The notes under the pieces are model-generated. The model was not told where the DNA came from, did not search any database, and saw nothing but the letters and a program-made list of their open reading frames with translations. Shown here piece after piece: positions 1 through 31,500 of a stretch of 64,000 nucleotides of DNA. This DNA comes from Geosiphon pyriformis uo1. Lineage: Eukaryota > Fungi > Glomeromycota. How positions within the stretch are numbered: the first letter of the stretch is position 1; every line of letters starts with the position of its first letter. Where the stretch lies: contig JAAOMT010000134.1 in NCBI GenBank assembly GCA_016748015.1, positions 440,757-504,756 on the forward strand, in the 5' to 3' direction. The translations under genes were made by a program, and so were the position numbers.

Positions 1-3000
1 CAATGGTTTGAATGGTTTCCGAAGTTGTCTTTGATTTAATTTTTTCTAACGCAACTTTTTGCTCTTCACGTGAGTGCCAAGCCAAGCCGCCAATAGTCGT
101 AGCGACACCAGTAGCAAGTCCAAGTCCAAGAATAGCACTCTTTGAGAACCATGACTCTCTTTCCTTTTCCTCATTCTTTTTTGTTATTTTTTCCTCTAAA
201 TGAACTTCATTGACTTTAGCTGCGGTTTGAGCAACTTCTTTATGCGTTACCTTCTCTACCACAAATGTTTCAGAGACCTGCAAAATTTCTTCCTCTAATT
301 TGGCGTCTTTGATCTCCAAGCTTAGGTATTTTCGGGCTTCGTCATATTTTGTTTGCCAGTGCGAATCGTGAACAGAAGCCTTCTTCAGATATGCAAGTGT
401 GACGGCAGTTGTCCACCATGAGGCGTTTGCGGATTTCTTGAGCCGTTCACTGGTCGCATATTGCTGGATGGAGGTCACTAAAGTTTCAGACGATGAGACA
501 TCCAATTTTTCAGAAATCACTTTATTCAACTCAAAGGAACCATCAGTTTTCTGTGAGGAGAGGATAATGTCAGTGGTTTCAAGGGTAGTTTTAGAAGCGA
601 CATCATTCAGGACAGCTTTTTGAGTTTCTTGAGATTTGGAGGCTTTCTTGATAACTTCCTTCTGAGTAGCTTTCTCAACTACGAATTTATCCGAAACTTG
701 AAGGATTTCCTCCTCTAATTTGGCATCACGAATTTCGAGACTCAAATACTTGCGAGCTTGATCATATTGGGATTTCCAATTAGCTTCATGAGCAGTCGAA
801 GTTTGCTTCAAATAGGCGAGAGTAACAGCGGTTGTCCACCAGGAAGCCTTTGAAGATTTTTTAAGCTTTTCACTAACTTCATATTTTTGAATGGAGCTAA
901 CTAAAGTTTCCGAGGAGGAGATGTCCAAATCTTCGGATACGACCTTGGTTAAATGGAATGAGCCGTCAGTTTTTTGGGCGGACACGATGCTCTGGGTGGT
1001 TTCCGCTGTTGTCTTGGATTGTATCTTAGCAATGGCAGCTTTTTGTTCTTCATGCGAATGCCATGTAAAACCACCTATAGCCGCCGTGGCAGCCGTGGCG
1101 ATACCTAGGCCGAGAACAGTACCCTTAGACAACCAGGATTCGCGTTCTTTCTGTTCTTTTTGTTGATTCAATTTTTGACCGAGATGCTCTTCGTGAACTT
1201 TGGTCGCAGTTTGAGAGACAGTTTTGAGGGTGACCTGTTCAATTACATAGGTATTTGATGCTCGCAGAATCTCCTCTTCCAATTTCGTGTCTTTGATCTC
1301 AGCGCTAAGATATTTTCGAGCCGCTTCGTATTTGGCTTTCCAGATAGAATCATGCGCAGCAGAAGTGTTCTTTAGGTAAGCAATAGTAATGGCCGTCGTC
1401 CACCATGAAGATTTAGCAGATTTCTTGAGCGTTTCGCTAGAAGTGTATTGATTAACTGACGCTATTAAATTATCAGACGAGGAAACGTGAAGTTGATCCG
1501 AAATCACTTTGTTTAATTCAAATGAGCCGTCAGTTTTTTGAGAAGAAATAATGGACTGAGTGGTTGCAAAAGTTGTGTCCTTGGAAATTTGCTTCAAAAC
1601 AGCTTCTTGAGTTTCCTTGTGCTGGGACGCACCAGTGACAATGACTTTTTTGGTAATTTTTTCAACAACAAACGTCTCAGAAATGTGCAAGATTTCTTCT
1701 TCTAGTTTTGCGTCATTGATTTGTGAACTAAGATACTTTCGGGCTTCATCGTGCTTAGCTTTCCAGACAGAATCATGAGTCGAGGAGGTTTTTTGAAGGT
1801 AAGCAAGGGTAACTGCAGTTGTCCACCACGAGGCTTTTGCTGAATTTTTAAGCTTTTCACTGATCTCATACTTTTGTACTGAAGCAACCAGTTTTTCGGT
1901 GGATGAAATGTCGAGCTGCTCGGCGATAACTTTACTCAATTCAAAAGATCCATCAGTCTTGTGAGATGACACAATTTTTTCAGCGGTCTCGACACTTGTT
2001 TTTTTCTCCACCTCTTGCAGAGCGGCTTTCTGTTTCTCGTGCGAGTGCCAAGCAAGACCTCCTAGAGCAGCGATACCTCCAGCAAGACCAAGGCCGGTAT
2101 ATATAGCTTTCTTAGATAGAGAAGATTCCTTTTGCGTCTCCTCGTCTTTTGTCACTTTTTGGATCTCTTGCTTTTTAGTATCTAGATGTTTTTCGTTCAC
2201 ATTGGAAGCGGCACTGGAAACGGCTTGATGAGTAATTTGTTCAACGACAAATTTTTCCGATACCTGTAGAATTTCTTCTTCTGCTTGGGCATCGTTAATC
2301 TCGGCGCTAAGATATTTCCTTGCCTGGTCATATTTCTCTTGCCAGTGCGAGTCATGAGTATATGAAGTTTTCTTGAGGTATGCAAGTGTGACTGCAGTCG
2401 TCCACCATGATGATGACTTTGAGGATTTTGTTAATTTCTCAGTAGTAACGTATTTTTGAACCGATGACAAAAGTGTTTCAGTAGAAGAGATGCCAATGTG
2501 TTGTGATACTGATTTGCTCAATTCAAACGAACCGTCTTGCTTTTGAGTTGAAACGATCGATTGAACTGTTTCAACGTTGGTATGTTTTGCAATAGCTTCA
2601 ATTACCGCTGTTTGCGTTTCTTGAGACTGGGAAGCCTTTTTAACGAGTGCTTTTTGGGTTGCTTTTTCAGCGAAAAACCTCTCAGAGACTTCTAGGATTT
2701 CTTTTTCTAAACGAACATCTTTAATCTCGTTGGTGAGATATTTTCTCGCTTGATCGTATTTGGCTTGCCAAACGGAATCATGAGCTGCTGAGGTATGTTG
2801 AAGATAGACAATAGTAACGCTAGTCGTCCACCACGAAGCTTTTGCAGATTTTTGAAGTTTTTCACTGATATGATATTTAGAAATTGACGATACAAGTGCT
2901 TCAGTAGAAGATACATCAAGCTGCTCGGCAATCACTTTGCTCAACTCGAAAGAACCGTCCGTTTGATGCGACGAAAGAATCTTTTGAGCAGTTTCTACCG

Positions 3001-6000
3001 TTGTTTCGTTCTTAAGATCAGTCAGAGCAACCTTTTGCTCTTCATGAGAGTGCCAGTCTAAGCCATGACCACTTATAGTTCCAACTCCTACAGCACCGAG
3101 GGCACCCAATGCTACCTTAGAAATTTGTTCCTGTTTCTCTTTAGCCTGCGTTTCTTTGATCACCAAATGTTCTTCGTGAGCCTTAGAGGCAGTGTGAGAA
3201 ACAGCTTTCTGGGTTACCTTTTCTACAACGTAGGTCTCAGACACTTGAAGAATTTCCTCCTCTAATTGAGCATCGTTGACTTCGAGGCTTAGGTACTTTC
3301 GGGCTTGATCATAATTGGCTCGCCAAACCGAATCATGCTCCTTTGCAGTTTGGTTGAGATAGGCGATTGTGACAGCGGTCGTCCACCAGGATGACTTTGT
3401 GGATTGTTTTAACTTTTCACTTTTAGCGTAACTTTGTATCGAAGTCACCAAATTTTCAGAAGAGGAGACATCAAGCTTTTCGGAGATTACTTTGCTTAAT
3501 TCAAACGAACCATTAGACTTTTGGGAATTGACAATAGTTTTGGTAGTATTGACGTTGGTATGTTTGGCGATTTCGTTAAACACAGCTTTTTGAGTATCCT
3601 GAGATTTGGAAGTTTCCTGGATAACCGCTTTTTTAGTCACCTTTTCCACGACAAACGTTTCCGACACCTTCAATATTTCTTCCTCCAATTGAGCATCATT
3701 AATTTCGACGCTTAGGTATTTCCTCGCTTCATTGTACTTTGATTGCCAAACAGAGTCATGAGCTGACGCGGAATTCTTGAGATAAGCAAGGGTAACAGCT
3801 GTTGTCCACCAAGAAGATTTTGCTGATTTTTTTAGTTTCTCGCTAGACTGGTAATTAGAAATTGAGGACACCAGTGTTTGCGAAGACGACACGTCAAGCT
3901 CTTGCGATAATACTTTGCTCAATTCGAATGATCCGTTCTGTTTCTGCGAAGTGAGGATAGTTTGCGTGACATCAACTGAGGTCTTTGATTGAAGCTCATT
4001 AATAGCGGCCTTTTGCTTTTCGTGCGAGTTCCAAGCAAATCCACTGCCAATAGCTGCGATTCCACCAAGGCCAAGGCCAACTAAAGCACCTTTCGATAAT
4101 AGAGAATCACTTATCTTTTTTGATTCTTCTTTCTTTGAGATTTTTTCTTCGAGATGAGCTTCCTGTGCTCGAGCCGAAACATCGGTGATAGTTTTGTGGG
4201 TTACTTTTTCAACAACAAATGTCTCCGAGACGTTTAGAATCTCTTCCTCTAACTTAGCGTCCTTAATCTCTGTACTAAGATAATGCCTAGCTTTCTCATA
4301 TTTCTCTTGCCAATGGGCATCGTAAGCAGATGAAGTTTTCTTTAGGTAAGCAAGAGTGACAGCGGTTGTCCACCATGAAGATTTGACAGATTTCTTTAGC
4401 GTCTCACTAGTAGCGTATTTTTGCACCGACTCTACGAGGACTTTATCAGAAGAAATTCCGATGCGCTCCGAGACCACTTTACTTAATTCAAAAGAGCCAT
4501 CATTCTTTTGAGAAGAAATAACGGATTTGGTATCTGAAATTGTTGTATTTTGAGCGATTTCATTTATGACTGTTTCCCGAGTTTCTTTAGTCTTCACAGC
4601 ATTATCCACAATAACTTTTTGAGTTATTTTTTCGACGACAAAGTTTTCAGAGACGTGGAGTATTTCTTCTTCCAATCGAGCATCTTTGATCTGAAGGCTC
4701 AGATATTTCCTAGCTTCATCGTGTTTGGCTTTCCATACAGCGTCGTGAACTGACGTGGTTTTGTTTAAATAGGCTAGGGTAACAGCTGTGGTCCACCATG
4801 AAGTCTGAGCCGACCTCCGAAGCTTCTCACTGATTTCATATTTATGAATGGAGGAAACTAAAGTTTCAGAGGAAGAAACATTGAGATTTTCAGAGACTAC
4901 CTTACTCAAATCGAAGGAACCATCATGTTTTTGTGAGGAGAAAATGTTCAAAGATGTTTCCTCATTAGATTTAGATTGGATTTCGGTCAGAGCAGCCTTT
5001 TGTTTTTCGTGAGAGTGCCAGGCGAGACCACCTACGGCAGCAGCAACTCCTGCAGCCCCGATACCAAGTATTCCCGCTTTTTTCTCCCAGAAGTGAGTGT
5101 CCTTTTGATCTTTCTCATTAGTTTTCTTATTTTTAATATTTTCCAACACCGATTGCTGATTCTGTTGGTTTTGAACTACTGACTTTGTGACCCTTTCAAC
5201 CACGTATTTCTCCGAGACTTCAATCACTTGCTGTTCTAACGTAACGTCTTTGATTTGTTGACTCAAATAATGACGACCTGATTCGTAGTGCTTGCTCCAA
5301 TGAGATTCATGATGACCGAGCACCTTTTTGAAATAAGCGAGCGTTATGGCCGTTTTCCAGATAGAAATGTCGAGCTCTTGCGCTCTTTTGTGAGTAACCC
5401 TGGCTTGTAGTGATTTAGAGATGTTTTCAGTGTCTTTAATCGAAAGATGTTGAATGATAGAGTGTTCAAGTTCAAAAGACCCATTTTCTCTTTGTGCTTT
5501 GATAATTGTTTGAGTTTTTTCAATTGTAACATCTTTTCGAACGGATTCGATTACAACCGCTTTCGCTTGTTGACTTACGACTTGATGTGTAGCCTTTTCG
5601 ACAACAAATCTGTCGGTTGTTGCGAGCAGTTCCTTTTCAAGTTCAGCATCTCCAATCTGAACACTCAAATATTGTTTTGCTCGTCCGTATCTCTCTCTCC
5701 ATTCCACCTCATCATTGGATCCAGCAATTTTCAAATAGCTGAGGGTAACAGCCGTTGTCCACCAAGAAGCTTTTGCGGTTTCCCGGAGCCTCTCACTGTG
5801 GGCATAGGCTTTGACGGACGAGATTAGTGTTGTCGAGGAGTTGACGTCCAGCTCTTTTCTCAACACATCATTGACTTCAAAAGATCCATCTTCTCGTTGA
5901 CTTGAGACGACCGATTGAGCGATTTCTTTGGTAACACGTGATTTGACTGTTGAGACGGCATTCTGATGTTGAACTTGAAGGACTTTCTGAGTTCTTTTGG

Positions 6001-9000
6001 CAATTACATATTCGTTTGTCGCCTTGAGAATTTCTTCTTCTAGCCTTACGTCATTGATTTGTGTGCTCAAATACTTTCTGGCCCGTTCATATTTCTCGTT
6101 CCACTCGATCTGATTGACAGACGAAGAAGATGTTTTGAGATAACTAATGGTGACTGCGGTTGTCCACCAAGAGGCTTTAGAGGATTTCTTGAGTTTTTCG
6201 CTAATGGCGTATTTCCGAGCCGAGATGATTAAAGTTTCAGCAGAAGAGACGTCAAGTTCTTTAGAAATCGATTCGTGGAGCTCAAATGATCCATCTTCCT
6301 TTTGCTTCGATATCACAGATTGGATCGTTTCGGTACTGGTTTGTGACGAGACTAAAATGCGAGCAGCCTGTTGTTGGGTCAATTTCTCGGCACGAATCGT
6401 CTTGTAGGTAGTTTTTTCCACTACAAATTTTCGCGAAGCTTCCAAGATCTCCTCTTCCAATTTTACGTCGTTTATTTGGGTGCTTAAATATTTCCTTGCC
6501 GATTCATATTTCTCTTTCCAGTGCTCTTCGTGCGCGGATGAGGTGGTTTGCAAGTAGCCGATAGTGATGGCCGTTGTCCACCATGAGGCCTTTGTTGTTT
6601 TCTTAACTTTCTCACTTACCGCGTAAGATTTAACAGAGGTGACTATGGTTTCAGAAGAAACGTCGAGCTCCTCAGTTATAATTTTACTCAGCTCAAAAGA
6701 ACCATCGGATTTCTGAGAGGAAACTATAGATTTTGTCACTTCCACGGAGGTTCTGGATTGAATCGTCGCTAAAGCTACACGCCTTTCACTGGTCTTTTGC
6801 TCTTGGATTACCTTTTGTGTTGATTTTTCATTTACGAATTTTGACGACGCTACAAGAATTTCTTCTTCTAATCTAGCATCTCCAATTTGCGTGTGAAGAT
6901 AATTTTTACCCGCTTCATATTTTTCACGCCAGTGTGTCTCGTGGGCGGATGCATTATTTTTCAGGTAGCTTAGAGTAACGGCTGTCGTCCACAAGGAAGC
7001 GTTTGTTGATCGTTTGAGCTTCTCGCTAATTGCGTAAGATCTTACAGCGGTTATCAATGTTTCAGATGAGGAGACGTCAAGTTCTTTGGACACAGTTTGG
7101 CTTAGATGGAAAGATCCATCTTGCTGTTGCGTGGCCACAACAGCCTGTGTAGTTTCAAGTGTAGTTCTAGATTGAATCTTTAGTAGAGCGTTTCGTTTTT
7201 CTTCCTTTTTTTGTCTCCTGGCAACCTTATAAGTAGTTTTTTTGACTACAAATTTGTGAGAAGCTTGCAAAATTTCCTCTTCTAACTTTGTATTTTGAAT
7301 CTGGAGGTGAAGATAATTACGTCCTGCCTCGTACTTTTCTCTCCAATGTTCTTCGTGAGCCGAAGCATAATATTGGAGGTAACTCAAGGTGACAGCGGTG
7401 GTTATCCAAGAAGATTTGACATTTTTCTTCAGTTGCTCGCTAAACCCATACGATTTTACGGAGGTGGTCAATGATTCAGAGGATGAAACATCAAGCTCAT
7501 GGGATATTATTTCACTGAAAGTGAATGAACCGTCTTTTTGTTGTGAAGTGATCACGGCTTGGGTAGTCTCAACGGACGTTTTGGATTGAACGGCAACTAT
7601 AGCAGTCTGCTTGGCAACCTTTCTTTGCTTCCGGATCACCCTATAAGTGGCTTTCTTCACGACCAATTTAGACGAGACTTTTAAAATCTCTTCTTCAAGT
7701 TTGGCATCGTTAATTTCCGTACTAAGGTATTTCCTAGCTGCTTCGTATTTTTCTTTCCAGTGTTCTTGATGAGCGGAAGCGTTATACTTGAGATAGCTTA
7801 AGGTAACAGCGGTAGTGTACCAAGATTCTTTTGCAGAATGCTCAAGTTTCTCGCTGATTCCATAGGATTGTAAAGAAGTGACCAAGGTTCGAGAAGATGA
7901 GATATCAAGTTCCCGGGAGATTTTCTCACTGAATTTAAATGATCCGTTCTGCTCTTGAGTTGCAATTATTGCTTGAGTTGTCGCAACGGTAGTCTCTGAT
8001 TGAACTGTTGATAATGCGGTTTGCTTTTCAGTCTTCTTTTGTTTGTGAATGGCTTTTGCCGTAGTCTTTTCCAAAACATATTTATAAGAAGCTTTTAGGA
8101 TTTCTTCTTCTAATCCGACATTTTTGATTTGACTACTGAGATATTTCCGTGCAATCTCTGATTTAGACCTCCATTCGGATTCGTGGGAAGAAGCCGTGAT
8201 TTCAAGATAACTGATGGAAACGGCGGTTGACCACCATGAGAGATTTGTAGATCTTTTGAGGCTTTCACTCACTACGTAACCATGAGTTGAAGTGATCAAT
8301 GTCTCTGAGGATACAGACAGATGTTCCGAGACTTGTTTGCTGAGTTCAAAAGATCCATCTTGTTTTTGTGCGGAAATAACCGATTGTACCGTGTCGATGG
8401 AAGTCTTTGACTGGATGTACGAGATCGCATCGCCTCTTTCTGTTTTTCGTTGTTTACGAATAATTCTGTTTGTAGTTTTCTCCAATACGTATTGGCTTGA
8501 GACTTTGAGCAACTCGGCCTCCAACTTCGCATTGTTGACTTGAGAGCTAAGCCATTTCAAGGCAGTTTCATAGCTTGTCTTCCAATGACTTTCGTGACGG
8601 GAAGCGGAAAGTCTAAGGTAATTAAGAGTGACAGCCGTTGTCCACCAAGAGACTTGCGCAGAGTTTTTCAGCTCTTGGCTTACAGAACCACCTGTACTGA
8701 TTGAAGAAATCAATGTTTCAGAAGAAGATACCTCAAGTTCTTTGGAAATTGTTTGGCTGAAATTGAAGGACCCTTCGGCTTTTTGAGAATTCACAATAGA
8801 TTGTGTAGTTTCAATCGTCGTCTTCGATTCCAAGTGGATAAGGGCAGTGGCACGTTGTTTACGTACAATCTTCTTTGTCGCCCTATCCAGGACGAACTTG
8901 TGGGCAGTCTCCATAATCTCCTCTTCAAGTTTAGCATTATTTATTTGACCACTCAACCACCTGTTTGCATGCTCATATTTTTCTTTCCAATAAAGTTCAT

Positions 9001-9650
9001 GTTGAGAAGAGGAAATCTTAAGGTAACTGAGAGTGACAGCGGTAGACCACAAGGATGCTTGCGTTACTGACTTGATGTTTTCGTTCAAACTGTAAGAATG
9101 AATTGAAGCTGTTAATGTTTCATTAGAAGAAATGTCCAATTTTTTAGAGATGACTTCATTCAATTCGAAATGTCCTTCTTCTTTATACGATGAGATAATA
9201 GATTGAGTTTTTTCAAGAGATTGTGACGTTTGAATGGCAATCTGCGTCAGTCTCGATTGTTTTTTAATAAACGTGGCGGAAGCTCGTTCAAGTACATAAC
9301 GATGAGATATCTCGAAGATTTCTTTTTCGAGTTCAGCATTGTTAATCTGCGAACTCAACCACCGTCGAGAACTTTCATAATCCTTCTTCCAATAGGATTC
9401 ATCATTGGCGGCTACAATCTGAAGGTAGCTGAGGGTGACGGCGGTGGTCCACCAGGTTTCTTTGGCAGAAGTCTTTAAACGTTCACTAACTCCATATGAA
9501 TGAATTGATGAAACCAATGTTTGTGAGGAGGATACATCAAGTTTCTTGATGATGGTCTCGCTTAGTTCAAAATGTTCTTGTCTCTTATGATAAGTAAGTA
9601 TCGATTGGGTTTTTTCGACAGTGTGATAAGTTTGAATAGCGATAATAGCG
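1..9650 (-). repeat. Coding tandem array of 21 full ~135-aa helical repeats: 11 plain units of ~400-415 bp, then 2-unit higher-order blocks of ~990 bp
   Basis: Anchor motif (plus-strand gtccacca = W-W-T, or variants) at about 411, 835, 1397, 1821, 2399, 2825, 3381, 3803, 4367, 4791, 5355, 5757, 6162, 6575, 6986, 7400, 7815, 8228, 8640, 9045 and 9447. Confidence 0.92.
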
Positions 9651-12600
9651 GTTGTCTGCTGTTGTTGCCGAGCTGAAATTTGTGTTTTTGATTCATTCAC
9701 AACACTACTTGATCCAACGGAGTGAGTTTGTGATTGCTGTTGTTCGTGTTTACTAAAAACTGCTGCTGCTGCTGCTGCTGCTGCGACGGCGTCATGAGTT
9801 TGCGATTGCTGATGTTCTTGTTGATCTGAAGTTTGTACTTGATCGAGTAGGTTTTCTTGTTCAATCGATTTACTTTTATTCTGAATGTCGGACACGAAAC
9901 TTTGATCGGCTGTGAAGGCCGATTCATCAACCTGATACCTTTCAACAATAAATTTTTTGGCACTTTCTTGTATCTCCGCTTCCAATCGAGCATCACCGTT
10001 CAATTGTTTTTGTAACCATTTAGTTGATTTTTCGTAATTCGAGATCCATTCATCTCTATAATCAATGGCGACCAATCTCCAATACCAAAGGCTAACTGCG
10101 GTGACCCAAACATTAACATGAACCTTGTTGACCTCTTCAGTGGTAAAATAACTCTTGAGATGGGTTGTGAAAGTCTCTGAATTTTCGAAGCCATAAAAGT
10201 TAACAGTGTTGTTGTCCAAAGAATATGCGCCTTCTTCGGACTGGTAGGCGATAAAACGATAAACATAACGAGCAGTAATGATCTTTCGTGTCACAATCTT
10301 GTTGGTGATTGCTTTTGAAAGATTTTTGAAAAAGGGAGATATATTATTAGAAATTGCAAATAAGGAGAGAAACAAAAGTTAATTCTATACATTAATCCGA
10401 GATAAGAAGAATGTAGAGATACCTTTGGTTATGAAGAGTTCTTGTCCTTCCTCAAATTCTGTAACGTTGAATCGGTCTACGATAAATTTTTTGGTGATTT
10501 CGAATAAACGATCTTCAAGATCAATATCATAAACTTCTCGGCTTATCCAATGCTCGCTCTTCTCAATGATTTGAGTCCATTCGCTACGATGTTTCCAGAA
10601 TAAGATTTTCAGATGAGTGGTGACTAGAGCAGTTGACCAGACGGATAAATCCAGGCTAAGCAAGCGCTCCTCATGTCCAACATATTTCCTGAAACTGGCA
10701 TCAAGTTCATCTTGAGATTTGAAGTTGAAAAATCGCGCCAGTCTATCGGAGAATTCGAAGGACCCTTGGCTTTCACGTAAACTGATGAGGGTGTAAAGGT
10801 GGCGAGAGGTTATCGTATCCTTATTGAGGACAAAGCCTTCTTCCCAAGTCACGCCAGTAGCAAAGAATTGAGCGTCGAAATTTAATTGTCCTTGCGTATC
10901 TTTTCCGGAAACAGATTGGAGATTCACCCAGTGATTTTCTATAACTTTTGCACTATCAAATGATTTATCTTCCAGTTGGATGATTAGATCATTGGAGTTG
11001 AGCACATAGTAACCAAGTGAGACATCAGAAACGAAAAGACTAGAGTCAAAAATCTCTAGTGTTATTTCCTCGCCAGCATAATGAATAGGGACATAATGAA
11101 CTTCGTCAAACACCGGATTCACAGTTGAATGCACGGCTAGTGTACGAGCAATTTCTTTTGTGTCTCCGCCAAGAACTTTGACATAAGGATCTGTATGACC
11201 GTTGAAAAGGCCTTCAGGCTTCTGAAGATTTTTGGCTTGATGCAGTTTAATTTTGATTACTCCAATTACATCATCCTGATCAGGTAAGGTAACAGGGGCA
11301 GCATCAGGAGCGGGAAGATCTTCAACAACGGTATTTAAGGTAGATTTGAAAGATTCATCTTCTCGAATAGTTTTCTCGTCTACTTGATACCTCTTAATGA
11401 CGTATTGTCTAGCTGCTTCGTAAACCTCTTTTTCAGTCTGTTCGTCTTTGACTTGTTCCCTAATCCATGTTGAAGATTTTTGATAAATGTTTGCCCACTC
11501 GCTGCGATGATCTACTAGCACGTAACGGAGATACCAAATCAAAACGGCGGTACTCCAAACGTGAACATTAAGTTGAGCAATTTTTGAATTGGAAGTAAAG
11601 TGAGCGGAGAGATGTTTGTGTGCCTCCTCAGTAGAAGTGAAACCAAGTGACTCTGCCAGCTGGGTATCCAATTCAAATGAGCCTTGCTTCTTTTGATAGG
11701 AGATAAAACGGCGGACGACACGGATGTTTACTTGACGACGGGTAATAATTGTCGTTGTGGTTTTGACTAAATGAACACAATAATAATAATCAAACGAGAG
11801 ATACAAAAAGATTTTGAATGAGTCAATATGATTCATGTAATAATAAAAAGAAATGGAGGAGGGGAGGGAGGAGGAGGAGGAGGAGGAGGAATTATCGATT
11901 ATTATTTTTATTTTTTTTTACCTGTAGTGTATAACTTCTCTTCGTGCTCTTTATCTTGGAAACTGGTGATATTGAAGCGTTTGATGACATAACTGTTAGA
12001 ATATGCATACAACTTCTCTTCAATATTAATGTCATTAATGTTTTCGTTTAGCCAAGTTTCACTCTTGGCATGGAAAGTCAACCATTCAGACCGATGGGTC
12101 CATAGTAATGCTTTCAGGAAAGAAGTGACGAGAACAGTTCCCAATATATCTTCATCCAGGCCGCGTAGACTCTGGTCAGATTGAAGGTGTACTCGGAAAG
12201 ACTCGATTAACTCTTGCCTTGAGGAGAAATTGAAAAGCTGTGACAATTGGTCATTCACTTCAAATTCACCATTTGGTCGCTGAAGAGTAATAATAATATA
12301 AAGGTGACTTTTGGAAATAGTGGTGGATGAAATTTCTTGATTCTGAGATCCAGCGAATCCACCCAAGGGTAAGAAATCAGCCGTGAGCTTCAATTGTCCC
12401 TTTTGGGATTTTTGATAAATTAATTTGACCCATTGGTCGAAATGTTTTTCTTGAATACGTCCATCAGCGCGACGAGAAACAAGATCTTTTAACTCCAAAG
12501 TGTACGTGCCCAGGAGGGTGTGCTTGAAAAATGCATTATAATCGTTAACGGTGAATAGGAATTTTTGCTGAAGGTCGTGAACTGGTACGTAAAAAACTTC

Positions 12601-12828
12601 ATTCCATCTCGGGTTAAGGTTGTTATACTGAACATTGGTTTCACCATATTGCCAGCCGGAATTTAAATCGGTGATAACAACATAAGGATCAGAGGCACCA
12701 CCTGCCCACCAGGAATCGGCTGAAGGCAATTTTCTGGCATTTTCAACGAAAACACGCACGATACCTATTGATTTCGGAGGATCTATAATTTATTTTGCAA
12801 AAAATCCGTTAAAATCATGTAGTAGTAG

Positions 12829-12905
<77 letters not shown>

Positions 12906-15378
12906 ATTGTTATTGTTGTGATCAGCAATTATCCATTTTTTTTGGTTTGTTTAAATAGTGGCATCTCAGATATATATATATATAAGAAAAACTCGAATCG
13001 CAAATTACCTATTCCTTTTCGAAGAATCAACTTCCTTGGTTTGAAGTCGATTTCAAAACTGTCATCCAATTTCACAGCCTCATCGTCAACTTTATAGTAT
13101 TCCTTGGCGTAATTTCGAATAAGTTGGAATGCATCCTGTTCTATTTGAACTTTTGCTTGGAATTGAGCCCAAAGCCAACCATAAGCTTTTTCGTATTGTT
13201 GAATCCACACGTCCTTATGATCAATGGCAACGAAACGATAATAGTGTAGCACCAAGATTGTAACCCACACATGAGTTTCGATGCCATTCAATTTGGGATT
13301 TTCAGAGTTATTCCTGACGATTTGGGTAATTTGTGAAGTTAGATTGTCTGCATTATTGAAAGAAATGATTTGAGCGAGCTCATCCGTGACAATAAACGCC
13401 CCGGACTTTGATTGGTAGGTAAATGATTGTCGAATATGTTGATGAGTTATATTTTGTCTGGTTATACCAGTCGGGACGATATCTATATTGTTGTTATTGT
13501 TGCAAAATCAATTTAGTTAGGGTTAGGGTTATGGGTTATTATTTTTATAATTATTGATGATGATGATGATGATGATGGGATTTGAAGGAGGGAGAGGAAA
13601 GATTCAGAGAGATATATATATATATTTCCAATTAACTTACAAATATCGGCAGCTTTGATATCGAATCGTGATCGAATAGTTTTTCTCGCGATAGAAATGA
13701 TGGCTTCTTCAACCTCCAAATCACCATTGATCTTCTTACTAATGTACTGTTCAGCACGATCGTAAACGGTTGACCAGTCTTTACGGTAGGTTCTTAGCAA
13801 ATATCTTAAAAACCAAAGGACCAGACTTGTTGTCCATAAAGTTTCATCGGTTTTTAAGATTCGCTCCTCTATCTTATGACGTTCAACATTTTTCTTAAAT
13901 AGGGCGATCAGTTCATCAGAAGTTCCGTAACCAAATAGTCTTGCCAATTCTTTTGTTGGAGGGAAACTGCCGTTTGTCGCTTGCAAAGTAATCAGGGTGA
14001 AAAGAATGTTGATGTCAAAAGGATTTTTCTTGAGATTGGTGAGGAAATTTGGACCTGGCTCAGGACCATTGACCAAGGGAAAGAATCTTGCTTTAAAATG
14101 AAGTTGTCCTTGAAGTGACAATTTGGCATTTCTGAAATGTTTTAAAAGAAAGATTGTAAGGAACAAGATTAAAAAAATTGATTTGCTCAAAAGTAAAACG
14201 TTCGGTTTTCCAAGTTTAAGGTCATCAAAATTTCTTTGCAGTGGGTAGGTAGGTAGGTAGGTAGGTAGGTGGGTGGATGGATGGAAAAACATGCATGCAT
14301 GCCATTTAAAGATAAATTATTCTGCAATTACTTACATATGAATTCCTTGTTCAGTGCCCTTATAGAAACCTTCCGACACCTCTTTGACGAGCTCCGTAGT
14401 AACTTCAAAAACGGTTGTACCAAGAGTTTTATCTCTTGTAAAAGTGTTTTCATCAAATGCCTCAATTGTGAATTTTTGGCCAATATGCGATATTGGAAGA
14501 TAGTAAAATTCGTTCCAGACCGGGTTCAAGTCGTTATCGATCGTTTTTGTTCTAATGAGTTGTTCCTTGCGATCCGATCCATAAACGACGATATAAGGAT
14601 CTGATTTGCCTATTTTTGCGATAATTGGGTAGGGAGGTCAATAGCTGTCACTACCACCACCACCACCACCACCACTAAACAAATATTTTATATCATTAAA
14701 CCATTTGAAATTTACCAGCTCCGGCCCAGTTCTCTACATTTCTCAAATCTTTGGCATTCAATATGTCCAATTTGACGACACCGATTGATTTGCCTGTTTA
14801 AAGAAAAAAAAAAAAAAAAAAGGTTACTCGATAGTATGTTTGGTGCTGAATTCTCGCGTAAACGCTATGGGACATGTTACCGCGGTTAACCACAGTAGCA
14901 AATGGAGGGGGTTGGTTAAGAGAAGGTGAAAAATTTTACCTGACGAAGGGGTTCCTTGTACACTCACAAGAATCCAATTAGCAGACTTATCTTTACCAAA
15001 ACCTTTGGCAGTAGAGTCAACCAATACCACATTGGAACCTTCTTTGGCGCTTCCTTTCACTTCCAAAACATATTTACTTTGACTTTGTAAGGCGAAATAG
15101 CCGTCTTTGGTAAAAGTCCAACGTTGATTTTGAGCTTGAGTTGAACTTCTCTTGTGGTGAAGAATGGTGCGACTGCCAACTTTTCCTATAGTATATCGAA
15201 AAGAAATTTGTTAGATATTACCACGTGATATAAATTAAAGTTGTAGTGTTCCGCGGATTTTATAAGGGTAACACAGAGAGGTTCAATGATGATCATTTAC
15301 GCGACGACAACAGTAGAAAAATAAAAAAAGTCATTGTTCTATCTATCTCACGCATACATACATACATACATACATACA

Positions 15379-15410
<32 letters not shown>

Positions 15411-15713
15411 CACACACACACGGTCAAAAAGTGAAAAGATTAAAAAAAAAAAGGATGAATTACCGTTTTCCACTTCTAAAACGAAATCAGGATTTCCCTT
15501 GTTGATGATCCAACCATTCTCATATCTCCAGAGTTGTGTGGGATCATGAGCGGTCTCACTTTTTTGTCTTTGAAGAGCTATCTTGGTACCGTCCTTGGGT
15601 GCAGTCCAGAAGAAACCTTTTTCCGTGTCAAGGACATAACTCTGGCCAACAGGTGAAGCGGCCGACTTGATATAAAGGTCCCCTTTGGGGAATTCGATGT
15701 TAGAGGATGTCAT
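1..15713 (-). CDS. Giant ricin-B lectin / 3x C2 / >=27x helical-repeat protein, 3' end beyond window. Exons 15713-15464, 15185-14940, 14793-14716, 14609-14336, 14131-13641, 13482-13009, 12782-11922, 11766-10423, 10311-<1
   Basis: GT-AG junctions found by hand. Exons 1-8 sum to 4018 nt (phase 1), matching the entry phase of exon 9. Hand translation of exon 9 at seven separate points falls in the same frame, and the ORF track lists no stop-terminated ORF in that frame over 1-10311. Total >4,770 codons. Confidence 0.88.
10860..11275 (-). other. C2 domain 3
   Basis: IGVIKIKLHQAKNL...TDPYVKV...TVNPVFDEVHYVPI...ITLEIFDS...DVSLG. Confidence 0.9.
12370..12775 (-). other. C2 domain 2
   Basis: RVFVENARKLP...ASDPYVVI...NNLNPRWNEVFYVPV...FTVNDYN...LLG. 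Confidence 0.9.
12830..12918. repeat. Compound (TAT)n(TGT)n microsatellite in intron
   Basis: Directly visible. Confidence 0.95.
14080..14790 (-). other. C2 domain 1 (tricalbin-like)
   Basis: IGVVKLDILNAKDL...GKSDPYIVV...RTKTIDNDLNPVWNEFYYLPI...FTIEAFDENTFTRDKTLG across exons 3-5. Confidence 0.9.
14965..15713 (-). other. Ricin-B / CBM13-like beta-trefoil domain (N-terminus of giant protein)
   Basis: Three sub-repeats YVLD...QLWRY, FVLEV...NQRWTF and YVLEV...ANW, i.e. the QxW pattern. No signal peptide visible at the N-terminus (MTSSNIEFPKG). Confidence 0.85.
15352..15421. repeat. (CATA)n / (CA)n microsatellite in intron 1
   Basis: Directly visible. Confidence 0.95.
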
Positions 15714-19136: not shown

Positions 19137-19293
19137 TTAACAATCATGAACGGTGACACCAAAATATGGACCATCATGATGGGATTGGAAAGTTTGTTCA
19201 AAGAATGGGATTGAGTTTGAACATTCCTAGAAATAAAGAAAAAACTTTTAGGATTAGTAATTCAAATCATTTTTTAATCTCAGATCTCAAATT

Positions 19294-19345
<52 letters not shown>

Positions 19346-20047
19346 TTTTATTACCTTGTTCTCTTGACCATCACATTTTAAAACACAACAATTCATGTCA
19401 TTGGCATCACTCTGAATCCAAATTTCACCAGAACTATGTTGATAACCAAATAATCTGGGAGGAATATGCGGTACAAGATCGACGGTATGGATAATACGTG
19501 ACATTAAAATTTTTGAGTCAACATAGTTTGCAAATTCAGTGTTACCAATACGTGGTTGTCCATAAGTATAAACGAAATAATTTTGATTTGAAATTAAAGA
19601 TGAAATTCTTTGTTTCAGGTCGAGAGCTTCCAAAACAGCGATGGCTTTAAACAAAAATAATAATTAAGAAAAAAGAATTTTAATATTTTTCATTTGAAAA
19701 AAAAATATTTCAATTTCAATTTCAATTTTTAAACATACTTACCACCACCTAAACTATGTCCGACAATCGCCAAGTTGAATTTCGGATTTTTATTCAACAA
19801 AGACTGAACTATTTGAAAAATTTCTTCTTTTACAGATTGAAAAGCGTTCAAGAAACCTTGATGTACTTTGGCACCTTTAACTCCCGGATATTCGGTTAAT
19901 AAGATATTAATAATAGTACTGATATCTTTGGCTTGATTCAATTGAGTACCACGAAATGCAACTACGATTAAATTTTTAGCATCGTTGATTGCTATGTAAC
20001 CTATGATATATATATATATATTTTTTATAAAGGGATAAAACAATTAA

Positions 20048-20092
<45 letters not shown>

Positions 20093-20617
20093 TAAATTCA
20101 AATCATTTTCATTTCAAAAATATATATATATATATATATAAATTTTACCTTGAGTATCACTATTCTGAGAATTAATCAACTTCTCAATTCGTGTTCCCGG
20201 AGTTGATTCACAACCAATACCACAATTCCAATCAGCAATTACCGAAAAATCACAATAAGCAACACTAGCATACTGCATAAAAGTGGCAAGATTACTAAGT
20301 GTCTCTTGAGAAGTTATTCTCATGGTAAAATATGATTTATCATGTGACATAATATCTGATTCTGGGTGTCGTTTTGGGTGTCGTGATTGATGATTATAAG
20401 AAGAAGAAGAAGAAGAAGAATAAGAAGAATCTGATAGATACACGTGAGATATAGATGGAAATGGAATCGATCTTTTCAATGGGTATAAAAATGCCTTTAC
20501 GTAATTATTATTATTATTATTATTATTATTTTTAACATTAGGTAAAATAAATAAAAAAAATAAAAAATTTATTTTAACAAAATTCATGATAAGTGTAACC
20601 AATGAATTTTTATTCAT
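19137..20617 (-). CDS. Secreted class-3 triacylglycerol lipase (Rhizomucor/Rhizopus type). Exons 20617-20149, 20000-19743, 19644-19355, 19226-19137
   Basis: YASVAYC...WNCGIGC, IVVAFRGT, KVHQGF, the GHSLGG nucleophile elbow, YTYGQPRIGN, DLVPHIPP and C-terminal CSNS...H...YFG. Hydrophobic N-terminus plus propeptide. Start codon choice (20617 vs 20587) is uncertain. Confidence 0.92.
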
Positions 20618-20774
20618 TTTTTGCTGATTTTTGAGTGAAATATTTTGTTTAAATAATTTTGCTATTTTCTTTTTTTCTTTTTCTTTTTCGAATGTCATTT
20701 TCCATCATTTATAACAACCTCTTTTATATTAATATTTTTACTCATATTCTCAATGAATTCCTCCTTCTTTCTTC

Positions 20775-28596: not shown

Positions 28597-31500
28597 ATGG
28601 CAGAATCAGAAAATATAGGAGCAAACCATTTAGGATTCGTGAAATCCTTGTTTCAACAATACAGCCAACAATTAGGATTAAACAGTAATCATTACCCAGC
28701 CAAATCAGTCTTCAACTTTTACGTCAACAACAGAATCACTGAATGCTTAGGAGGAACAGTTAACATTGAAGCAGCAAGAAAAAACTTTTACACAGAATTA
28801 TTCCAATACACCAACTTACCAAAGAACTATAGTTTTGCACCAATAATCAGAGAAATCAACCAGACTATTGAAAGGTACACTCAACAACAATTTCCCATTA
28901 TCTATGCAGACAAAAGTAAAGGAAGAATACAAACACCAGCAGCAACACCAAAAGAAATACAGTTACCTAGTTGGAAAAAGCACAGAATAGAATCACCAAC
29001 CACTCCATCATATTACTACACATCTGGAAGCACCATCAACATCTCATCAGCAGACGCATCCACCTCAAATACAACATTAACAGTTGGAAGATTCTAGTTC
29101 CAAAGCAAACAATAGAAAGAAGATTTACTAGGGCCATACGAAGTGTATTTTGAAGGATTTAAATCATGATCACCAACTCCATCAGGAATTCGATCACCGC
29201 CGCCTCAACTGGACTTTGGAATCACTACCCCGTGGGAACTATCTGAAGAAAAAAAGGAAGAAAAATCAGAAGATCAAGAATTTACTTACCAAAACCCGAT
29301 CACTGAAAACTCGGAAGTTGAAACCCTGAATTTTCAAGCTCAGCAAAGTCTAAATCTAGATAATTTGGAAATCGAAACCCCGAATCATCAAAGGCAGAAC
29401 AATCCAAACCCTGAATTAAGTAATCAGCAAAACTTACCTCTGGTAATTGTCATCAATCAACCGCCAATTAATCCAGTAGCCGAATCCATACAACAGCCAT
29501 TTTAACTACCACCCCAACAACCAGTACAACAACAACCACTTCAACAGCCACCACAACAACAACCACTTCAACAGCCACCACAACAATCCAACTTAGATCC
29601 AATGGCCTATGCACCAATCACAAAACTTGACAACTTTACTGGCAAAGAAGATAACGCACAAGTATGGCTGAATGATGTAGAGAAAACCATCACTGCAAAC
29701 AGATGGAATGATGTCCGAACACTTCAAGCCATTCCATACTTTCTAAAGAACACCACAGATGCATGGTATCAAAGTCTAGTTGTCAAACCCCAAAACTTTA
29801 ATGATTTCAAGATGGAATTTGTAAGATATTTCAGCAACAATAATAATATCAACAAATTAGCCAACCTTTTCACCACTATTAAACAAGGAGATACTGAAGC
29901 AGTTACCACTTACCTGGGACACTTCTATAGAAACCTACACCAGATCCAAGCAATTCAAGCTGACTATTTTACAGCACCACAGATTTTAAACCAATTTATT
30001 AGAGATTTGCATAGTAACCTCCTCCAGCGAATACGCCCAATGCATCCAGTTGACCTCCCTACCACAGTTACATATGCCAGAGATTTTGAAGCAGCTGAGT
30101 TAGAAGCCAACCACGCCCAAGCAGTAAACCTAGTAATGAATGGATCATCTGAATTGGACTCTAAACTGAAACAATTCAGTGAGTCAATTAATCAGAAACT
30201 AGAGGGATACTTAGCTGACAATTGCACCATATATCAAACACCACAATAATACCATAATTCAGGAAACATGAATCATTTCCAAAATCAATCACAGTCATTA
30301 TCCTCGACTGCACCTAGTCTACCGTGGCAGCTGGAAATGCGTGCCTGCCACAACTGTGGTAAACAAGGCCATATTCAAGTTAATTGCCATACTTATAGCA
30401 ATCAATGATTAGGAAATCAATACAGAAATCCCGATTGCTGGTTCCAAACTCCGAATCATTATCTGAATCAAGACCAAAACCAATATTAAACTATTTACCT
30501 ACCAATGACGCAACAACCAATCTATCAACTGCCAGTATATCAATCTTCAATTTATCAACAGCAGCCTCCAGTAATTTATCAGCCGCAGTCCCAAATAATT
30601 TATCAGTCTCAACCATCAATCCAAACACCATTCCAAAACTCAGCTATGATAACATCAGAAAACCCGAGACCCAGAATTGCTCAAAATTGGAGATCGGCAA
30701 TAGTTGTTCATTAACCAGTTCCCAGCTCTTTTCACCAGAGCTTAGGACCCCATTTTCGGAATTTGCATACAGGCGCCACCCAAAACCTGACTTCTCAACA
30801 CTATTTAAGTCTCCTGGTTACCTCAAAAGATGCCTCAACTAGCAACCAGAAACCCACTCAAAAACAACAAACACTTACCAGCAATATTCTGCCAGCAACA
30901 GTCATTAACAACAAATCACTAGCTGTCATTTTTCCATTTGAGATTGAAGAACTGTCAAGTACACCATTATTTAGTGGAGCCATTCTTAATGAAAAACCCA
31001 TCACCACAATGTACACAGATGCTAAGGTTGATAGTCAATCCATTAAATTGATTCTCAATAGCAGTTCAACAGGCAGTATCATCACACGACAACTTATGGA
31101 TCAATTAGGTTACCAAGTTGATTGAGCTGCCAGCGCCAGAATCATCACAGCTGATGGAGTGACCAAAACTCCAATCGGCAAAATCGACAACTTCCTTTTT
31201 GAAGTCAATGGTATTGTGACTCCCATTAAAGTTCTAATGATGGAAGCCACTCAATACCAAGCTCTCCCTGGTAATAACTGGATATCCAAAGTCAATGTGA
31301 TGTTAGACTAGAACATCCAGAAACTCCAGCTAATATATTAGGGCTGACACATACGTGTACCAGCCATGTGTGGCCATTTCAAGACTTCTCCAAGAGAGAA
31401 ACTATTGATCAAACTGGAGAAAGAGAAAAAGAAACCTACCTGGGAAGCGTACCAAGTCTTGTGGGCCAATGCTGACCACAATGAGCTGCCGTCAATACTC

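Follow-up and report, generated by a model that had tools for sequence, protein, structure and literature searches.

A single, expressed gene that is specific to the Glomeromycotina and encodes a cytosolic protein of 7,917 residues begins in a stretch of 64,000 nucleotides from Geosiphon pyriformis uo1 (contig JAAOMT010000134.1, positions 440,757 to 504,756; hereafter the window) and runs on beyond its lower end. The protein has a ricin-B lectin domain and three C2 domains at its head, followed by a very long tail, and along its length it carries 45 copies of a helical domain of about 135 residues, here called R. Both the architecture and the domain family are new, while the C2 and lectin modules around which they are built are known. 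From the architecture we infer that the protein acts as a giant, multivalent scaffold that binds peripherally to membranes and to glycans, and we put the probability of this reading at about 0.45, a little below even odds.

Gene model and transcript evidence

The window corresponds to G000:C710:440757-504756 in a genome of 128 Mb and 792 contigs, and a further 20 kb below it (L005) was also read. A reading frame on the minus strand stays open from position 10378 of the window down to base 2 (3,459 codons) and continues to L005:579, which is G000:C710:431335, 9.4 kb past the window. The exon that this frame represents, exon 9, is about 19.7 kb long. Stops were looked for in this frame, and none of its 6,600 codons in the window and L005 together is a stop. 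Upstream of the giant frame, seven shorter open pieces lie on the same strand; Pfam places the ricin-B domain in the second of these and C2 domains in three more. The resulting gene model has nine exons, 23,754 nucleotides and no internal stops, and its spliced product has a mass of 892 kDa (about 0.9 MDa), an isoelectric point of 7.1, two cysteines and 43 prolines. Searches were run exon by exon, and the joined protein was used only for length, stop count and mass.

The features of the gene are listed below. Profile A1 was built from 43 R units, A3 is an alignment of the 12 modules that consist of a spacer and two R units, and P0167 is a partial coding sequence (CDS) of 5,302 residues from Funneliformis caledonium.

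15464..15713, minus strand: exon 1, with the ATG at 15711-15713 and the first half of the ricin-B beta-trefoil (QLW motif); RNA contig and P0167 alignment
14939..15185, minus strand: exon 2, which completes the ricin-B beta-trefoil (QRW and ANW motifs); RNA joints on both sides
14065..14792, minus strand: C2 domain 1 (Pfam C2, 60.1 bits); collinear with P0167
14715-14792, minus strand: exon 3, start of C2 domain 1; RNA joint 14715/14608
14336-14608, minus strand: exon 4, middle of C2 domain 1
From 14131, minus strand: exon 5, end of C2 domain 1 and then R unit Ra1, with which the exon ends
13641..14031, minus strand: R unit Ra1, end of exon 5 (A1, 112 bits)
13009..13482, minus strand: exon 6, R unit Rb1 (A1, 108.9 bits); collinear with P0167 residues 453-592
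12361..12782, minus strand: C2 domain 2, start of exon 7 (Pfam C2, 68.3 bits); best PDB match synaptotagmin-1 C2A, expectation value (E) 2e-14
11922..12327, minus strand: R unit Ra2, end of exon 7 (A1, 122.6 bits)
11348..11766, minus strand: R unit Rb2, start of exon 8 (A1, 134 bits)
10856..11272, minus strand: C2 domain 3, middle of exon 8 (Pfam C2, 51.8 bits)
10423..10825, minus strand: R unit Ra3, end of exon 8 (A1, 134 bits); within a 3.5-kb RNA contig
10312..10422, minus strand: intron 8, GT..AG, 111 nucleotides, which takes out two in-frame stops at 10379-10387; RNA joint, depth about 50
1..10311, minus strand: in-window portion of exon 9, open frame; RNA contig over about 3 kb
9902..10306, minus strand: R unit Rb3 (A1, 126 bits)
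9599..9886, minus strand: glutamine/histidine-rich linker with a poly-alanine run, from the translation; no Pfam family
5144..9595, minus strand: eleven contiguous R units, period 134-139 residues by motif spacing (profile matches of 147-190 bits)
140..5020, minus strand: five complete spacer-R-R modules of about 325-338 residues each (alignment A3); seven more in L005
5021..5077, 4034-4090, 3068-3115, 2051-2098, 1064-1123 and 80-139, minus strand: six glycine/alanine-rich spacers, from hydrophobicity and coordinates; eight more in L005

Transcript evidence comes from one small, unselected public RNA run, kept as contigs, which are clearly spliced. GT..AG joints in these contigs excise approximately 15463-15186, 14938-14793, approximately 14715-14610, and 10422-10312 (introns 1, 2, 3 and 8). 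One contig runs from 15715, two bases ahead of the ATG at 15713, to 15463 and is joined there to 15184, and others join the lectin exons to the first C2 exon. A 3.5-kb contig with a depth of about 50 covers 10823-10423, is spliced to 10311, and then extends for about 3 kb into exon 9. Because this contig crosses intron 8, the exon of the third C2 domain and the repeat exon lie on one RNA. The contigs gave no sign of separate transcripts for the lectin/C2 part and the repeat part. Within intron 1, at 15351-15430 on the minus strand, there is a (TGTATGTA)n-like microsatellite, which in frame would read as repeated MYVC codons.

The four other introns (14335-14132, which has the sites GTAAGT..CAG, 13640-13483, 13008-12783, and 11921-11767) were placed by GT..AG sites and reading frame. 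When searched singly, each exon maps in order on P0167, with a few residues missing per junction, and this supports the four introns as well as the start codon. P0167 has the same MTS..EFPKG start and carries both head and tail in one frame. Its residues 1-90 align to exon 1 (51% identity) and residues 92-166 to exon 2, with identities in the range of 51-53%.

It is most improbable that the locus is an artefact or more than one gene, be it a tandem array that was mis-assembled or collapsed, a pseudogene, or a head gene adjacent to a tail gene. Such explanations can point to the regions without RNA contigs (10948-14500 and most of exon 9) and to the partial state of the database relatives. Against them stand 19.8 kb without a stop in a genome of 30-40% GC, the spliced contig that ties the third C2 domain to the tail, and the Funneliformis CDS with the same head and tail in one frame. 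In addition, the spacer-R-R modules differ from each other by 30-45% in protein sequence and are saturated at synonymous sites, so that they are not collapsed identical copies.

The selective history of the modules points in the same direction. Mean column identity in A3 is 70%, and the modules are 56-68% identical to each other. The proportion of differing synonymous sites (pS) is 0.755, which is saturated, while that of non-synonymous sites (pN) is 0.245, and the ratio of the two substitution rates (dN/dS), where an estimate is possible, comes to about 0.15. The modules are ancient copies, each held by purifying selection, and not an assembly artefact.

Domain architecture and the R fold

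From the N- to the C-terminus, the protein consists of the ricin-B domain, three C2-Ra-Rb units, the linker, eleven R units, twelve spacer-R-R modules, a threonine/glutamine-rich stretch, an R-R pair, two further single R units, and a tail of 120 residues. The part of about 4,775 residues that lies in the window has 27 R units (6 + 11 + 10). When profile A1 was run against the whole genome, 45 R units were matched among the best 46 candidates scored, all of them in the giant gene. The tail after the head thus holds 39 R units, with a glycine/alanine-rich spacer after every second unit over most of its length. A preliminary description, made from the letters of the window alone, had given the layout as ricin-B, three C2-R-R units, a linker, eleven R units and five modules plus a sixth hydrophobic segment, with about 27 R copies in more than 4,770 residues, continuation past the window and no signal peptide. 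The counts in the window agree with this layout, the full gene extends it, and the translated N-terminus is without a hydrophobic, signal-like stretch.

The C-terminal end of the protein departs from the regular pattern. The low-complexity threonine/glutamine-rich stretch is flanked by two more glycine/alanine-rich segments. This stretch, at L005:2628-3320 (residues 5700-5900 of the big exon), is a unique insert with a duplicated threonine/glutamine-rich unit of 20 residues and a run of 12 glutamines, and it breaks the module pattern. For the last 120 residues, the best Pfam match is CipC/DUF3759 (PF12585); it spans positions 15-83 of the 92 in the profile and, at 18.1 bits (E 0.0026), falls short of the cut-off of 25. 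CipC/DUF3759 proteins are small fungal proteins; here, the segment with this weak match is the tail of a giant one. No hydrophobic segment was found in the C-terminal 600 residues. Pfam matches of the big exon to DUF736 (70 bits), Phage_holin_3_3 and FAF were rejected as artefacts of repetition, since they are sums of tiny repeated matches and no single stretch passes.

The head is made of recognisable modules. On exon 2 alone, Pfam Ricin_B_lectin (PF00652) scores 24.4 bits; the domain is divided by an intron, which keeps this score under the cut-off of 29. The same domain in P0167, which also has three C2 domains, scores 32 bits. The giant protein was assigned a ricin-B lectin, with putative sugar binding, on its QLW, QRW and ANW motifs and the alignment with P0167. 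The C2 matches (PF00168) compare with a cut-off of 22 bits, and their nearest solved relatives are the C2A and C2B domains of synaptotagmins (synaptotagmin-1, -3 and -7), myoferlin, E-Syt2 and MCTP2. The calcium ligands were compared with D172, D178, D230, D232 and D238 of synaptotagmin-1 C2A, by alignment for C2 domain 2 and by eye for the other two. C2 domain 2 keeps three of the five acidic ligands and has N and T at the positions of D232 and D238. C2 domains 1 and 3 have E at the position of D172, D at those of D178, D230 and D238, and N or S at that of D232.

The R domain is an autonomous unit and is recognised by its motifs QxxDGSF and WWTTA..YL. Its structure is predicted with a mean local confidence score (pLDDT) of 92 and a predicted template-modelling score (pTM) of 0.86, as a helix bundle with one small hairpin that bears QxxDGSF. 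No Pfam family was found for R in any exon. Profiles A1 and A2 (the latter a more diverse alignment of R) gave chance-level rows or none among PDB sequences, and Foldseek of R against the PDB gave no match at E <= 0.001.

Possible kin of R were sought at the level of fold. In a fold search of the ESM Atlas, two clusters that bear VWA domains (a bacterial protein of 789 residues and a rotifer protein of 476 residues) match R with template-modelling scores of 0.64-0.65 over 101-105 residues and root mean square deviations of 2.1-3.1. First by fold (0.67) and by language-model features (0.91) is a Chordata cluster of 236 residues. With an exhaustive aligner, the vault-binding domain of PARP4 (residues 1570-1707) superposes on R with Z 4.5-5.1, values that fall inside the noise for helical models. 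The top PDB match of this aligner is residues 728-842 of 9e5c_4t, a protein of the Trypanosoma brucei flagellar doublet, with Z 8.8 and 8.2, also in the range of helical models. The preliminary description had likened R to the C-terminal domain of VIT-vWA proteins and PARP4; the likeness holds for the fold, by way of the Atlas matches and weakly for PARP4, and does not extend to sequence in the PDB profiles. We conclude, with moderate support, that R probably has the type of fold that is found at the C-terminus of VWA-type proteins, as a likeness of fold and not as demonstrated homology.

The resemblance to VIT-vWA proteins covers the domain and not the protein. The C-terminal domain of VWA5A/BCSC-1, Dictyostelium Vwa1 and PARP4 (the MVP-interaction domain) is, like R, a helical bundle of about 130 residues. 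In those proteins it occurs once, together with VIT and vWA domains, whereas the giant protein has 45 copies and neither of these domains. No exon has a VIT or VWA match in Pfam, so the protein does not belong to the VIT-vWA family. In those proteins the C-terminal domain is a protein-protein interaction module, with the vWA domain or the vault shell as its partner (PMC10539598; title of PDB 9bw6). Two copies of a VIT-domain gene are present elsewhere in the genome, 26.7 kb apart (G000:C595:634655-635034 and 661371-661750). The idea that the protein tethers vaults was tried and set aside: a search of the genome for MVP_shoulder and Vault repeats gave nothing, a weak negative, because the controls were silent too.

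A second comparison is with the QW-type hairpins of alpha/alpha-toroids, which, as in R, carry a QxxDGSF-type motif on a small beta-hairpin between helices. Partial superpositions were obtained on the thioester domain of C4Adg (Z 5.9), CD109 (Z 5.1) and GGTase-III (Z 4.3), all in the noise range for helical models, and the Atlas search also lists squalene-hopene cyclases and prenyltransferases. The alpha/alpha-toroids (C3/C4/A2M/CD109, prenyltransferases, terpene cyclases) close a toroid, whereas R has a single motif and no closure.

Relatives, spacers and neighbouring genes

An exhaustive profile search gave 511 representative proteins at E <= 1e-3. When 26 clusters were looked up or carried a source name, 24 belonged to named organisms, all of them Glomeromycota, and the other sampled sequences came from metagenomes or the SRA. 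The named genera are Gigaspora, Cetraspora, Scutellospora, Dentiscutata, Racocetra, Acaulospora, Entrophospora and Funneliformis. Nearly all of the named relatives are labelled 'partial', because fragmented assemblies cut them, and they are uncharacterised. A characterised protein with the ricin-B/C2/R architecture was looked for among the relatives searched, and none was found. The architecture is kept across Glomeraceae, Gigasporaceae and Acaulosporaceae, and the head of ricin-B and three C2 domains is present in both Acaulospora and Funneliformis. Outside the Glomeromycotina, the searches made returned no C2-Ra-Rb arrangement.

Outside the giant gene, R lies mostly right after a C2 domain, in tyrosine-kinase-like proteins and in one MACPF protein. 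R is therefore a mobile domain in Glomeromycotina. The MACPF protein, P0171 from Funneliformis geosporum (1,934 residues), has the order MACPF-DUF7431-C2-R x5 and thus joins a perforin-like pore-forming domain to the C2-R cassette. In Gigaspora margarita, eleven near-identical entries with consecutive accessions (KAF0474129-KAF0474139) lie on one 292-kb contig. They form the P0030 cluster. At least P0030 itself combines C2 and R with a tyrosine-kinase-like domain, and the rest bear the names 'kinase-like protein' or 'c2 domain containing protein'. The R units of Gigasporaceae have about three conserved cysteines each, in contrast to the two cysteines in all 7,917 residues of the Geosiphon protein.

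The spacers differ among lineages. In Geosiphon there are 14 glycine/alanine-rich segments of 16-20 uncharged residues each, with Kyte-Doolittle values of 1.3-1.85; those in the window are at residues 1768, 2097, 2422, 2761, 3086 and 3414 of the big exon. In an AlphaFold2 model of one spacer-R-R module (pLDDT 84.6, pTM 0.76), the R-R pair is above 90, and the glycine/alanine-rich segments have a pLDDT of 27-35, form no stable helix and are predicted to be disordered. Summed over 19 residues by the biological hydrophobicity scale, the estimated insertion free energy is +1.4 to +5 kcal/mol. The hydrophobic moment of the spacers is 0.14-0.29, as against 0.47-0.65 in Gigaspora and Cetraspora, where the orthologous spacer is an amphipathic helix that follows every third R. 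The one spacer found in Funneliformis is a polar glycine/serine/threonine stretch, and long runs of R have no spacer there. The grouping of repeats also differs by lineage (R-R or R-R-R), and the conserved element of the spacer region is a short motif, H-x-E-K..A-L, just ahead of the R unit that follows.

On these grounds (low pLDDT, positive summed free energy, amphipathic or polar orthologous spacers), the glycine/alanine-rich segments are unlikely to be transmembrane spans and would rather be flexible spacers or shallow elements that associate with membranes or with each other. Some small metagenomic R proteins (P0064, P0081 and P0131) have a glycine-rich hydrophobic stretch directly before R, which leaves room for a shallow membrane-binding or self-associating role. 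The preliminary description had proposed a cytosolic rod with a lectin, C2 domains and periodic membrane anchors. Its architecture and cytosolic nature stand, while the periodic anchors are weakened by a pLDDT below 50, marginal hydrophobicity, and the amphipathic or polar replacements in orthologues.

The opposite view would be that the protein is polytopic, with all 14 segments as true transmembrane helices of the glycine-zipper kind and the R-R pairs on alternating sides of a membrane or in an oligomeric membrane array. Glycine-zipper helices exist, and the length, lack of charge and hydrophobicity of the segments, the weak match of one of them to phage holin TM1, and the hydrophobic stretches of the metagenomic proteins would fit. 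This is nevertheless highly improbable, given the disordered prediction, the positive estimated free energy, the lack of a signal peptide, and the orthologues that have different spacers or none over long runs of R. Furthermore, near-identical R-R pairs would need to work in two compartments.

The neighbourhood of the giant gene is ordinary: two features were recorded in the window, and genes for NPR2 and a cation-efflux protein lie below its stop. The lipase gene is the next gene on the promoter side.

19280-20698, minus strand: exons of a class-3 lipase gene (Pfam Lipase_3, 51 bits)
29602-30249, plus strand: gag fragment of a Ty3-type retrotransposon (Retrotrans_gag, 34.8 bits)

Possible functions in coenocytic hyphae

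In the scaffold reading that we prefer, the C2 domains would dock the protein to membranes, possibly in a calcium-dependent manner, and the weakly hydrophobic or amphipathic spacers may add to membrane contact as well as to flexibility. The lectin would bind glycans that come into contact with the cytosol. Length and many protein-binding sites would be provided by the 45 R domains, and membranes and organelles could be cross-linked as a result.

Several observations weigh against this reading. The best PDB fold scores of R (Z 8.8, then 5.9) are common among helical models, and the PDB sequence profiles gave no link in sequence between R and VWA5A or PARP4. The equivalent of D232 is N, N or S across the three C2 domains and some other ligands are altered, so that calcium dependence is plausible but uncertain. 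The 14 segments of about 20 residues could still be embedded in a membrane. Finally, the regions without RNA contigs leave alternative transcripts possible.

Other proteins with several synaptotagmin-like C2 domains are the extended synaptotagmins/tricalbins, the ferlins and the MCTPs. The giant protein differs from all of them in the Ra-Rb pair that follows each C2 domain. Pfam scans gave no SMP match, and the N-terminus is not hydrophobic; thus, it is not an extended synaptotagmin or tricalbin. Nor is it a ferlin, since there are no Pfam matches to FerA, FerB or DysF and no C-terminal transmembrane anchor.

The most attractive setting for a scaffold of this kind would be calcium-triggered gelation or plugging after the rupture of a hypha. 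On rupture, the C2 domains would respond to an influx of calcium and the lectin to exposed glycans, and the tail with its weakly hydrophobic spacers would cross-link organelles into a plug. The comparison here is with the gellins of Mucorales (Nguyen et al. 2021), which two papers describe as cytoplasmic repeat proteins with about ten tandem beta-trefoil Gll domains (PMC12712441, PMC10873517). Both are giant cytoplasmic multi-repeat proteins of coenocytic, early-diverging fungi, with beta-trefoils and hydrophobic or membrane-active elements, and for both the cross-linking of organelles upon wounding is a plausible role. The repeats of gellins are themselves beta-trefoils, whereas the giant protein has one beta-trefoil, a helical repeat and C2 domains, and is therefore not a gellin. 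By this analogy, the giant protein may be the factor by which arbuscular mycorrhizal fungi gel or plug their cytoplasm in response to wounds, a functional counterpart of gellins made from different parts, a proposal that we regard as rather unlikely when taken in this specific form.

A constitutive structural or tethering role, with no special part in wounding, is rather unlikely, though the likeliest of the alternatives. The protein would then be an elastic rod in the manner of spectrin or titin, or a tether between organelles and the cortex, and would keep the cortex, tubular vacuoles, lipid droplets or nuclei in order within giant spores and within aseptate hyphae whose contents stream fast. 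With 45 folded helical domains the array is very long, its modules are ancient and under purifying selection, the depth of the RNA contig is high in an unselected run, and conservation in three families would suit a housekeeping function. C2 domains with incomplete sets of calcium ligands, moreover, often bind lipids constitutively. An N-terminal cytosolic lectin is harder to account for in such a role. Nothing in the evidence separates a constitutive tether from a response to damage.

The lectin can also be read as the business end of a cytoplasmic defence protein directed at fungivores or microbes, in which ricin-B targets foreign glycans upon ingestion or invasion, as in other nucleocytoplasmic lectins of fungi, and the rest is a carrier or aggregator. 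Fungal ricin-B lectins of the cytoplasm have an established role in defence. A ricin-B domain without a signal peptide fits this, as does the fusion of R and C2 to a pore-forming domain in P0171. However, a carrier of 0.9 MDa for a single lectin domain would be extravagant, and Pfam scans show nothing toxin-like in the giant protein, so that a defence role is improbable.

What the scaffold might mean depends on which of these roles it has. If the role is structural housekeeping, the finding is a more modest one, namely one more giant repeat protein, not described before, together with a domain family that is also new. In either case, it defines an undescribed domain, R, which these fungi have combined with C2, kinase and MACPF domains. 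Public databases contain the family only in the form of CDSs that are unnamed and for the most part partial; a complete model of 7,917 residues is therefore useful for annotation and proteomics.

Arbuscular mycorrhizal fungi are open-pipe coenocytes that have no Woronin bodies, and how they survive rupture and organise their streaming cytoplasm is an acknowledged question (PMC12712441, PMC12165283). Gellins have not been detected in these fungi (PMC12712441, PMC10873517). If the giant protein does act in gelation, it would take the place that gellins leave empty. The gene is a concrete, lineage-wide and expressed candidate for this question.

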